This document shows positions 11,306-14,795 of a DNA stretch of 64,000 nucleotides, piece by piece (position 1 is the first letter of the stretch; each line of letters begins with the position of its first letter). This DNA is from Selaginella moellendorffii (Eukaryota > Plantae > Lycopodiophyta). The notes beneath the pieces are model-generated. The model worked only from the letters and a program-made list of their open reading frames with translations. It was not told where the DNA came from and searched no databases. The position numbers and the translations under genes are program-made. The DNA lies in contig NW_003314289.1 in the NCBI RefSeq assembly GCF_000143415.4, positions 1,420,293-1,484,292 on the forward strand, in the 5' to 3' direction.

Positions 11306-11602
11306 ATGGACAAGGCAGCAAAGATCACCCTTGTTCTCACACTCACTGTTGCATTTGCATTTGCCTCACTCGAGTCCACCAATGCTGTTGAGATAGCTCC
11401 CAACACAAAGTTTGTGCCGGCTTCTTCTCTTCTCTCATACTTCAGGAGCCTGAAAGAGCTGGAGTGCATGCCGCACTCTCAATGCTGCCCCGACTCCAAG
11501 CCCTGCCCATCAGAGGACCAGGAGTGTAAGATCTGTGCCAAAATTTATCCTGCACTGTGCTTCTGCACGGACAAATCTGGGCTTAACAAGCTGATGCTGT
11601 AA
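11306..11602 (+). CDS. Secreted Cys-rich peptide, Bowman-Birk-like protease inhibitor (copy 1, loop CAKIYPALC)
   Basis: Signal peptide; 8 Cys; ICAKIYPALCFCTD aligns with the BBI loop C-x-P1-P1'-x-P-x-x-C-x-C-x-D; TATA-like tataaata at about 11210. Confidence 0.75.
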   Translation: MDKAAKITLVLTLTVAFAFASLESTNAVEIAPNTKFVPASSLLSYFRSLKELECMPHSQCCPDSKPCPSEDQECKICAKIYPALCFCTDKSGLNKLML

Positions 11603-11966
11603 TCTGGAGGTATGCATAACTTATCTCATGTTTCTTTATACTCAGTGCTAAGCATTTATGTGTCCCACAACCACTTAGTTTTAACACATAAAGACATTTG
11701 TTCCTCCATTCTTCATAAGTCGCCCGTCTTCTGTATTTTCCGCTTTGCAATTGGTGCATTAGTGGCTGTTTCTTTGATAGCCACGCACTTCGCTACTGAT
11801 AATAATAATAATAAAACTCTCAAGCTTGTTTGAGAGTTGACCTGTTTGAACGATAATGTCTTAATGGTGACGTGTTAGTACGGTATGGTGACGTGTCTGT
11901 ACGGTCTGGGTCTAGGGTTTTGGATCTATGTCGTCTAGGGTTTTACAGGCAGCGGTGGCGGTGAGG

Positions 11967-13548
11967 ATGGAGAGCGCGAGAGGCGGCGCGCCCGTCGACA
12001 AGGCGGTGGATTTCGCGAATTACTTCTGCACCTACTCGTATCTCTATCACCAAAAGGATATGCTGTCGGATCGGGTGAGAATGGATGCCTATCACTCGGC
12101 CGTGTTTAAGAACAAGCGCCATTTCCAGGGAAAGGTAGGAGATCTCTCTTCTTACTCTTCTTGTTTCAATCGATGGTTTTGGATCGAGCAGACTGTCTTG
12201 GACGTGGGGACTGGGAGTGGGATTTTGGCGATTTGGTCGGCGCAAGCCGGTGCTAAGAAGGTGTACGCGGTGGAAGCTACAAACATGGCTCGCCACGCGC
12301 GGAGCTTGGCGAGCGCGAATGGAGTGAGCCACATTGTGGAAGTGATCGAGGGGTCGATTGAGGATGTTTCCATTCCCGAGAAAGGTGAGTGTTGTTTTCT
12401 TTTCCCTTGCGTCTTTCTTTCCTTCTCGTTTGTGTTTCTTCGTCTCTTTGCTGAAGAGACAGTGTGTGTGTGTGTGTGTGTGTGTTATGCGATGCGACTA
12501 TATACCAGGGCTGTTTTGTGACTTTCGTGCTGAGCAGTCGATGTGATCATCTCCGAGTGGATGGGCTACTTCCTTGTTCGTGAATCTATGTTTGATTCGG
12601 TGATTTATGCGCGTGATCGTTGGCTCAAACCATCTGGATTGATGTATGTAGTTTTTGATTTGTCTCCTTTTTGTACACTGGCTCACTCACAATCTTTTTT
12701 TGTTGCTCAGGTATCCCAGCCATGCTCGTATGTGGTTTGCTCCCATAAAGACCAAACTCGTAGAGCAAAAGAATCAAGAGTATCAGAAATCACTGGCGGA
12801 TTGGAGCTACTTTGCTCAAGAGCTAAATGAGGCGTATGGTGTTGATATGAGCACCCTGACAATGCCATATCACGAGGAGCAAAAAAAATACTACTTACAG
12901 GTAAAATGTCTCTCTTTTTCTCTAGACTACCTAGCTAAAAACGATGTTTTTTTTTCACTTCCAGACGTCCTTATGGTCGAACTTATATCCGGGTCAAGTG
13001 ATTGGCGACCCGGTTGTTGTTAAAGAGATCGATTGCTCCAATGCAACGCTCCAGGACATTGCTGCTGTGAAGTCGCGATTTTCGTTTACACTTTCTGGAA
13101 GCGATAGGCTCTGTGGATTTGCCGGCTGGTTTGACGTTCACTTTCGGGTCCGCTTTCGTTCTTTGCGGATGATGAAATCTCTCCCGCTCTCTCTCTCTTT
13201 TCCTTTTCTCTAACTAGTGTGGCTTTCCAGGGGAATGCGTCGAATCCAGCGGACAAGGAAGTCGAGTTGACAACCTCTCCAAGTGACACTGATACAACAC
13301 ACTGGGGCCAACAGGTGCTTTGAAGCGTTTCTCTTTGCTACTGCTAGTGAGACTTATTTTTCTCTCGACAGGTTTTCCTTCTCCAGCCTCCACTGGTGAT
13401 CGAAGACGGCGATGTAGTCCAAGGCTCGATCGAGATCACACGCTCCAAAGACAATCACCGGCTCATGGATGTCAAGATCACTCACGAGCTTCGCTCGTCG
13501 GGAGAACAGTTTTATCCGGCAACGGTTTGCAACTTCTTTATCGAGTGA
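11967..13548 (+). CDS. PRMT10: Protein arginine N-methyltransferase 10
   Basis: [62 protein letters not shown]; multi-exon; upstream in-frame ATG at 11928 possible. Confidence 0.95.
12462..12485. repeat. (GT)n microsatellite in PRMT10 intron
   Basis: gtgtgtgt... about 12 units. Confidence 0.9.
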
Positions 13549-13679
13549 AAACTAAGATTTTCCTGATTCTTTCAAGCAAAACTATAGACATTGACACTCA
13601 CGAAAGGGTACATGACTTTTAAAAGTGAATATTAACTAATTCGTTTTTCATCCTGGTACTAAAGTTTTCGGGTAAAATA

Positions 13680-14067
13680 AAGGATGGATGCTGCTATCCA
13701 AAAGTGGCACTTTTAGACAAACAATCGTGAAAGGTTTAATGATCCATAGATGATCTATGGCCCCCAAAAGTTGCTAAGTTTGAGGATCAAGCTTCCCTCT
13801 CGAACGTACTTTCGAGTTGCTGTCATGGTGGCCCGTGAAAATGATGAAATTCCCACTGGTTTGCATCTGGATTGGAGCCACAGCCAGCTCGCACTGCGTT
13901 CCATATCGGTGAAGACTGGTACTTTTTGTTTGATTGATGCTAATGACAATACAATCAAGTCAGGGCGGATGCTGCCAGATGAAAAGCTTGTTGTCAAGAG
14001 GGAAGTAGCAACAAAAACCAAACAGAGCGAGCGAGCTCGATTAAATGCCTTATCTTTACATTGGTAG
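13680..14067 (+). pseudogene. Decayed ORF-X paralogue
   Basis: LRIKLPSRTYFRVAVMVARENDEIPTGLHLD matches ORF-X; N-terminus partly deleted. Confidence 0.75.
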
Positions 14068-14149
14068 ATATCTAAAATATAAACGCCTGTATTGAAGCAG
14101 AAATCCCCAGTTGAACTCTCTGAGACTCAAAAAAAGGAGAAACATCCCA

Positions 14150-14217
14150 AAGTGTCGGGGAATTGAACACGGGTTTATACCGTGGCAGGGTACTATTCTA
14201 CCAGTAGACCAGCAGTC
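14150..14217 (-). pseudogene. tRNA-Gly(GCC) pseudogene
   Basis: ggggaattgaacacgggtttataccgtggcagggtactattctaccagtagaccagcagt is the reverse complement of tRNA-Gly with T-arm, D-arm and acceptor-stem lesions. Confidence 0.85.
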
Positions 14218-14498
14218 ATGTTGGCTGCCATGGTCACACAGAGAAAAACAACAAAGATTGATGCTTGATGTATTATCTTCAATTTCACAAATTTTGTGTC
14301 TTAGTGAATTGAACAGACTTGGATCACCTCATGGCTATCAAAGAGATAGGCACTTCACAGCCATTAATGGGCACATAAAGAAATTATTACTCTACTCTTC
14401 AGATCAGAAGGTGTACAAAGGTAGACCATCTTCTGGGACACACAAATGCTTAGCACAGAGTATAAAGAAACATGAGATAAGTTATGCATACCTCCAGA

Positions 14499-14795
14499 TT
14501 ACAGCATCAGCTTGTTAAGCTCAGGTTTGTCCGTGCAGAAGCACAGTGCAGGATAAGTGTGGGCACAGATCTTACACTCCTGGTCCTCTGATGGGCAGGG
14601 CTTGGAGTCGGGGCAGCATTGAGAGTGCGGCATGCACTCCAGCTCTTTCAGGCTCCTGAAGTATGAGAGAAGAGAAGAAGCCGGCACAAACTTTGTGTTG
14701 GGAGCTATCTCAACAGCATTGGTGGACTCGAGTGAGGCAAATGCAAATGCAACAGTGAGTGTGAGAACAAGAGTGATCTTTGCTGCCTTGTCCAT
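14499..14795 (-). CDS. Secreted Cys-rich peptide, Bowman-Birk-like protease inhibitor (copy 2, loop CAHTYPALC)
   Basis: 98 aa, identical to copy 1 except KI>HT and SG>PE. Confidence 0.75.
   Translation of the reverse strand: MDKAAKITLVLTLTVAFAFASLESTNAVEIAPNTKFVPASSLLSYFRSLKELECMPHSQCCPDSKPCPSEDQECKICAHTYPALCFCTDKPELNKLML

Follow-up and report, generated by a model that had tools for sequence, protein, structure and literature searches.

Five Bowman-Birk inhibitors of the lycophyte Selaginella moellendorffii (BBI1-5) have been published (James et al. 2017, Plant Cell 29:461), one of which, BBI3, reportedly inhibits trypsin (cited in PMC7995804). The Selaginella Bowman-Birk inhibitors (BBIs) are held to be double-headed, this being taken as evidence that the domain duplication is older than the angiosperms (PMC7995804; bioRxiv 10.1101/2025.08.26.658694), and papers citing James et al. 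likewise credit the lycophyte BBIs with two heads. No mention of a single-headed Selaginella form was found in the literature searched, which did not take in James et al. 2017 itself. The reactive loop of the Bowman-Birk family follows the consensus C-T-P1-S-x-P-P-x-C, with Thr at P2 and Ser at P1' (PMC7760496). Single-headed forms are found among the 8-kDa BBIs of monocots, small disulfide-rich proteins in which a single reactive loop is functional (PMC7995804, PMC7760496), while SFTI-1 and the amphibian Bowman-Birk-like peptides consist of a lone disulfide-closed reactive loop with Pro at P3' and no second head (PMC7760496). Here we describe two genes, copy A and copy B, that encode one-module relatives of the lycophyte BBIs and lie within a 64,000-nt stretch of the S. 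moellendorffii genome (the whole stretch analysed, hereafter the window; contig NW_003314289.1, positions 1,420,293 to 1,484,292 of the forward strand).

A one-module relative of the Selaginella inhibitors

Copies A and B are real paralogous genes of S. moellendorffii. Each consists of a 297-bp open reading frame (ORF) of 98 codons and a stop, the two lying on opposite strands (Table 1), and an exact look-up found neither 98-aa product recorded anywhere as a called gene. The copy A precursor begins with a signal-peptide-like N-terminus (approximately residues 1-27), followed by a spacer (residues 28-52) and an eight-cysteine module (C54-C87); the signal peptide of both copies is a putative one, based on a by-eye reading. 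The ORF ends 11 residues past the eighth Cys, with a single module per protein. Met1 at 11306 is the likely start, because a further ATG at 11219, which is in frame in copy A directly 3' of the TATA box, has a counterpart in copy B that is out of frame.

We compared the two ORFs base by base and found exactly 6 differences. One is synonymous (codon 8, ACC in A and ACT in B, both Thr). Three fall in two adjacent codons, codon 79 (AAA/CAC, K79H, 2 nt) and codon 80 (ATT/ACT, I80T), and the remaining two are found near the C-terminus in codons 91 (TCT/CCT, S91P) and 92 (GGG/GAG, G92E). The predicted reactive loops are accordingly CAKIYPALCFCTD for copy A and CAHTYPALCFCTD for copy B, with Ile and Thr, respectively, at the predicted P1' position. 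The positions of the two genes, this tally of differences, and the lack of the canonical Ser at P1' in either copy had all been given in a first-pass annotation of the DNA, and all were reproduced here; that annotation had also described a compact, apparently single-headed, eight-Cys inhibitor, which the following alignments identify as a single-module relative of the described lycophyte BBIs.

An exhaustive phmmer search against 1.84 billion representative proteins returned three matches. The best was EFJ04383.1 (SELMODRAFT_432465), a 269-aa protein of S. moellendorffii that is considered below. S. moellendorffii BBI5 was matched with a library-wide E of 9.2e-4, and its 90% cluster also includes BBI1, BBI2, and BBI3. 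The third match, a 370-aa metagenomic repeat protein, had only the motif QCCPDG.PCPS in common with the peptide and was rejected as low-complexity Cys/Pro similarity. When the peptide was compared directly with the S. moellendorffii BBIs, pairwise BLASTP gave an E of 3e-10 with 53% identity over 36 aa, and profile-profile comparison by hhalign gave a probability of 97% and an E of 1.2e-10. In an alignment of modules, the peptide matched both modules of BBI1/2/3/5 at every one of its eight Cys, at the P3' Pro, and across the CFCT motif. The Cys pattern C-x5-CC-x4/5-C-x5/6-C-x2-C-x7-C-x-C was preserved, all eight Cys, together with the loop Pro and several flanking residues, forming invariant columns, and the peptide differed from the BBI modules by one inserted residue between C4 and C5. 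Identity across the Cys core was 54% between the new module and module 1, 41% between the new module and module 2, and 53% between modules 1 and 2; on these values the new module is a deep lineage of its own, the third alongside modules 1 and 2, and did not arise through recent truncation of a known BBI. Homology and Cys register make the peptide a member of the BBI-like module family of S. moellendorffii.

The word-index protein search returned nothing with the 98-aa protein, and with the combined profile it returned the known BBI cluster only, with no other species or 54-171-aa protein in the database. A profile that included the new peptides was also run against the PDB, where 11 of 12 matches were Bowman-Birk or SFTI chains (E 0.05-10), these matches covering the loop region only.

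The best phmmer match proved to contain a third copy of the gene, here called copy C. Residues 1-98 of EFJ04383.1 correspond to this copy, whose loop is of the His-Thr form and whose signal peptide differs at five positions. The remainder of EFJ04383.1 results from a chimeric gene model (positions 1645-3350 of scaffold GL377908.1, here L001) in which copy C is read through its intron in the 3' untranslated region (3'UTR) into exons that resemble a protein arginine methyltransferase (PRMT) gene, and this chimera contains the sole public annotation of the single-module peptide. L001 is 9.5 kb in length and carries copies A and B besides C. It has no mismatch to the window over positions 11000-15477, a duplication of 4.5 kb, so the reference assembly holds the locus twice; given this base-for-base identity, L001 was ruled out as an independent haplotype confirming the pair.

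Four sequencing runs were examined over positions 10700-15400, three of which (X1, X6, and X14) are RNA, since their contigs join exons of the PRMT gene between the two copies at GT..AG borders. Contig depth is a crude measure that sums paralogues, and contigs drop rare variants. The peptide ORFs had an RNA contig depth of 1e5 in X1 as compared to roughly 450-770 for the PRMT gene, which points to very high expression of the inhibitor genes as a group. Copy B is a working, highly expressed gene. Copy-specific RNA contigs (X14 records 15 and 16) span its His-Thr loop and private 5' untranslated region (5'UTR) without any difference, its 5'UTR bin had depths of 8831 and 673 in X1 and X14, respectively, and X1 record 4 spans 14269-14431 of its second 3'UTR exon at a depth of 9451 (mean of 2531 for the bin 14154-14310).

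The RNA also contained a variant that differs from copy B by L52V, H57N, D63E, Q71R, I76V, H79Y, E92G, and one synonymous change, such that seven of eight changes alter the protein. This Tyr variant predominates in X6, makes up a minority in X1 and X14, and may be allelic to copy B or come from a different locus. Loose ends of X1 contigs at 11422 and 11424 indicate that still other transcripts exist which have the mature part alone in common with those described.

Predicted inhibitor function and alternative readings

The reading that we favour, with some reserve, is that the peptides are secreted, single-headed, standard-mechanism serine-protease inhibitors that use the lycophyte BBI-like module as scaffold and residue 79 as P1. 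The precursor, which would be secreted, has a single eight-cysteine module where BBI1-5 have two. Its nine-residue loop, C77-x7-C85, which in both copies has P82 at P3', would be closed by a C77-C85 disulfide, form the end of a beta-hairpin, and enter the protease active site in the manner of a substrate, with the P1 residue selecting the target protease. Members of the family differ chiefly at this position, and the predicted P1-P1' forms are Lys-Ile (copy A), His-Thr (copies B and C), and Tyr-Thr (the further expressed variant); the targets would be trypsin-like proteases for Lys and chymotrypsin- or subtilisin-like proteases for His and Tyr.

The distribution of changes between copies A and B supports the inhibitor reading, because the scaffold is strongly conserved and the changes fall in the loop and tail. 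Within the coding sequence, the initial 234 nt hold a single substitution and the final 63 nt hold five; the 5' non-coding part, 170 nt in length, has 10 substitutions and two indels. If six substitutions were placed independently and at random, the probability that at least three would fall in the two P1/P1' codons is approximately 9e-5. In the 5' flank, each two of the copies A, B, and C are separated by a similar distance, 10-12 substitutions per 170 nt. Their coding sequences form a mosaic, in which A hardly differs from B over the first 234 nt, and B matches C without difference through the last 63 nt and further on. This mosaic, when set against the evenly diverged 5' flanks, indicates exchange among the copies combined with constraint upon the scaffold. 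The Lys-Ile/Ser state of copy A is the derived one, since B and C share His-Thr/Pro-Glu. The first-pass annotation had proposed a pair kept homogeneous in a palindrome and diversified at the specificity residue. The first part of that proposal is too simple for a mosaic in which A resembles B over the initial 234 nt and B equals C over the last 63 nt; as regards the second part, the copies do differ at the predicted P1 and P1' residues, and Tyr is found at P1 in the third expressed variant.

A number of observations weigh against the favoured reading. In the predicted loop, the near-invariant Ser at P1' is replaced by Ile or Thr and the Thr at P2 by Ala, and a P1' residue other than Ser had no counterpart among the BBI loops compared. 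Pfam family PF00228 (Bowman-Birk; MEROPS I12), the profile check suggested by the first-pass annotation, gave no match at E up to 10 for either copy, whether as the full precursor or as its mature part, and neither did any other Pfam family; the S. moellendorffii BBIs themselves score 22-30 bits against PF00228, the cut-off being 20.4 bits. Going by these features, the peptide lies outside the Pfam model, the loop consensus (with Ala at P2, Ile or Thr at P1', and Ala at P4'), and the double-headed 14-Cys framework of the classical family and its monocot derivatives, having eight Cys, a single module, and no second loop. A phmmer search of the PDB with the single proteins alone gave no match. 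AlphaFold models were of low confidence, with a mean pLDDT (predicted local distance difference test) of 52 without an alignment and 61 with an 11-row alignment of modules. The low-confidence model does place a hairpin at residues 72-78 and 83-89 with K79-P82 at its tip, as the favoured reading would have it. With this model the best Foldseek match in the PDB had an E of 5.5 and a wide VIA-align search found no Z >= 2. Closure of the loop by C77-C85 is likewise a prediction. The three loop substitutions sit at alternate bases within 5 nt and may be a single mutational event, in which case the coincidence figure given above weakens to approximately 0.08. Finally, the private 5'UTR bin (11171-11327) and 3' flank (11642-11798) of copy A had zero RNA contig depth in X1 and X14, and copy A has lost the acceptor of its 3'UTR intron.

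These last points bear as well upon a somewhat unlikely alternative, that copy A is a silent and decaying duplicate whose loop and tail changes reflect neutral drift or one multi-nucleotide mutation and confer no new specificity. Such a fate would agree with the zero depth on its private bins, with the 68-bp micro-inversion that destroys its intron acceptor, with five of the six differences being non-synonymous, and with the derived state of A. Depth within the coding sequence of copy A can be explained by short contigs common with copy B. Zero depth does not, however, establish absence, since contigs drop rare variants, and copy A retains an intact ORF, all of its Cys, the TATA box, and the G-box; it also differs from B at only one position within the initial 234 nt of its coding sequence, and its Lys is a classic P1 for trypsin. 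We conclude that copy A may be weakly expressed or silent. The first-pass annotation had suggested trypsin-like targets for the Lys copy; with no copy-specific RNA and a damaged 3'UTR, this copy may be silent or decaying and not a working, trypsin-directed paralogue. Of the two copies for which RNA-seq had been proposed as a check, it is copy B for which expression and splicing were seen.

It is unlikely, in our estimation, that the peptides are non-inhibitory, that is, secreted cysteine-rich peptides on a BBI-like scaffold with an antimicrobial or signalling role, the loop being a structural hairpin and nothing else. The variation falls upon P1 (K/H/Y), as expected for reactive sites, and while P2, P1', and P4' of the loop are non-consensus and PF00228 gives no match, the P2 Ala, P2' Tyr, and P4' Ala are present in the active loop 2 of soybean BBI, and a Thr at P1' retains the hydroxyl of Ser. 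Two further observations are in favour of a non-inhibitory role. Module 1 of the BBI1-type proteins (three published or annotated) has the loop CMPSNPPLC, with Pro at P1, and on this sequence is probably not inhibitory, so loops of that kind would occur in the family; and the protein atlas gave only generic knottin-, toxin- or cyclotide-like neighbours with low scores (below 0.81). The alternatives discussed here are not all mutually exclusive.

A third explanation, raised by the first-pass annotation as one that would undo the pair, is that two haplotype alleles of one gene were mis-assembled into one scaffold; we regard this as very improbable. In its favour, the S. moellendorffii reference assembly contains both haplotypes, L001 gives no independent confirmation by reason of its identity to the window over 11000-15477, and DNA contigs of run X10 have odd joints between opposite strands, at 11669/11732 and 11735/14426. 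Against it, a complete, spliced gene present as a single copy lies between the two inverted copies, whose outer and inner flanks are unrelated; the 5' non-coding parts show 6% divergence and two indels, more than the coding sequences do; copy B has its own RNA-supported 3'UTR exon that copy A is without; a third copy exists; and the X10 DNA contigs cover every bin of the stretch. The X10 joint at 11669/11732 fits a sample having the copy A micro-inversion in its ancestral orientation, and the joint at 11735/14426 may be a graph artefact.

Organization of the locus

The inverted arms that contain copies A and B are approximately 535 nt in length, extend beyond the ORFs, and are 97% identical in their core (Table 1). 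A G-box is found at the outer edge of each arm, approximately 55 nt 5' of the TATA box, and is kept in copies A, B, and C. G-box-type elements are typical of the promoters of jasmonate- or wound-responsive inhibitors. The 3'UTR intron of copy B begins 7 nt 3' of the stop codon. In copy A the acceptor of this intron was lost (CCCAG to CCCAC) because of the micro-inversion; the inverted stretch corresponds, in reverse complement, to the beginning of the 3'UTR exon 2 retained by copies B and C, and by blastn positions 2036-2087 of L001 match window positions 11715-11664. We also considered whether the 3'UTR intron might be a relic of an inter-module intron, and this was ruled out, the BBI5 gene being intronless and its 3' flank unrelated.

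Table 1. Features of the inhibitor locus, given in window coordinates
Feature	Position	Strand	Description or basis
Copy A	11306..11602	+	98-aa precursor; loop C77-A-K-I-Y-P-A-L-C85; tail DKSGLNKLML
Copy B	14499..14795	-	98-aa precursor; loop C-A-H-T-Y-P-A-L-C; tail DKPELNKLML
Inverted-repeat arm A	11136..11670	+	G-box, TATAAATA, 5'UTR, coding sequence, 3'UTR intron relic
Inverted-repeat arm B	14431..14970	-	G-box, CATAAATA, 5'UTR, coding sequence, 3'UTR intron
G-box CACGTG, arm A	11150-11155 (also 11107-11112)	+	direct sequence reading
TATAAATA, arm A	11210-11217	+	direct sequence reading
G-box, arm B	14956-14951	-	direct sequence reading
CATAAATA, arm B	14892-14885	-	direct sequence reading
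3'UTR intron of copy B	14433..14491	-	59 nt, GT..AG; RNA-contig joint 14432/14492 in X1
Second 3'UTR exon of copy B	14269..14432	-	reaches at least 14269; X1 RNA contigs
3'UTR intron relic of copy A	donor GT 11610-11611; acceptor position 11667-11668	+	acceptor position reads AC
Micro-inversion, copy A only	11669..11737	.	68 bp; local alignments and blastn
PRMT gene	11967..13548	+	between the arms; 366-aa public model; 7 exons in RNA contigs

The gene between the arms was identified as a PRMT from precomputed Pfam matches (PrmA, Methyltransf_25, and PRMT_C) to the public model in L001, at an offset of 6003, the sequence of L001 being equal to that of the window across the PRMT region. A (GT)n microsatellite is found at 12452-12493 within the second PRMT intron, and contigs break there. 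Two genes for tRNA-Gly(GCC), at 8394-8466 (+) and 15880-15952 (-), form a 99% identical inverted pair that lies 7.4 kb apart and frames the locus, and a degenerate tRNA-like third copy (88-89%) is present at 14153-14216, just past the RNA-supported part of the copy B 3'UTR. Partial, diverged copies of the 3' part of PRMT (83-98% in blocks) are found outside both inhibitor genes at approximately 8755-10379 and at 15250-15625. Because tRNA and partial PRMT copies surround the pair, a unit consisting of tRNA-Gly, PRMT, and inhibitor has been repeatedly duplicated and inverted.

Elsewhere in the window, weak tblastn matches to the inhibitor (for example near 62.9 kb) did not correspond to related ORFs. 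Runs of N at 210-309 (100 bases) and 36287-36814 (528 bases) are scaffold gaps, neither of them near the inhibitor genes. A scan for bacterial promoters and terminators, which is not applicable to a eukaryotic gene, found nothing.

A more speculative reading, which we regard as quite doubtful, is that the peptide is a surviving 'half-BBI' from before the duplication and that the tRNA-Gly/PRMT/inhibitor nest is a birth-and-death locus that yields new P1 specificities (Lys, His, and Tyr) on a frozen scaffold. The distance of the peptide from module 1 equals that between modules 1 and 2. If true, this reading would call for revision of the present view that the ancestor of the lycophyte BBIs already had two heads.

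Comparison with known inhibitors

The presence of a one-module relative with very high apparent expression in the same genome as BBI1-5 adds a missing form to the evolutionary picture of the BBIs. Counts of inhibitors in S. moellendorffii that are based upon annotation are incomplete, the peptide being invisible to Pfam and annotated only within a chimera. With its minimal scaffold, four predicted disulfides, natural P1 variants (Lys, His, and Tyr), and P1' residues other than Ser, the peptide also provides a probe of how far inhibition needs the loop consensus.

Compared with SFTI-1 and the amphibian peptides, which have 14-20 residues, one disulfide, and a canonical T-K-S core, the new peptide has a larger mature domain of approximately 45-70 residues, four predicted disulfides, and a non-canonical core. 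The loop of pro-SFTI-1 reads CTKSIPPICF in the PDB alignment. Module 2 of the BBI1-type proteins has the loop CTKSIPPIC, identical to that of SFTI-1. The 8-kDa forms of monocots derive from the double-headed 14-Cys domain through loss of Cys in loop 2; unlike these, the new peptide is a single copy of the lycophyte eight-Cys module with no relic of a second loop.

The chymotrypsin loop (loop 2) of soybean BBI (PDB 1d6r_I, 1bbi) has CA..YPA.CFC.D in common with the new peptides, corresponding to 10 of the 13 positions of CALSYPAQCFCVD; this sequence, quoted in the first-pass annotation, is indeed the one that chain 1d6r_I shows in the PDB alignment. The P2 Ala, P2' Tyr, P3' Pro, and P4' Ala of the new loop are those of the active soybean loop 2, KSC-ICALSYPAQCFCVD. 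Differences are found at P1', which is Ser in soybean loop 2 and Ile or Thr in the new peptides, and in the spacing before the loop, which is C-x-C in soybean BBI and C-x-x-C in the new peptides. Soybean BBI has 14 Cys in a double-headed domain as compared to the eight Cys of the single module, and no similarity between the new peptides and soybean BBI was detectable outside the loop.

The closest of the known systems are BBI1-5 (ARE30271-ARE30275), which come from the same species and have the same eight-cysteine module with every Cys in register. BBI1-5 and the new peptides share the motif EC.P.SQCCP.SK.CP...C..C(loop)CFCT and are alike in having a signal peptide (putative in the new peptides), a spacer, and an intronless coding sequence; in addition, the hydrophobic C-terminal tail of the new peptide (K-P-x-L...) resembles the tail behind module 2 of the BBIs. 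They differ in length and module number, the new peptides having one module in 98 aa and BBI1-5 two modules in 124 aa, and in the loop itself, which is A-[K/H/Y]-[I/T]-Y-P-A-L in the new peptides and T-[K/R]-S-x-P-P-x in BBI1-5.

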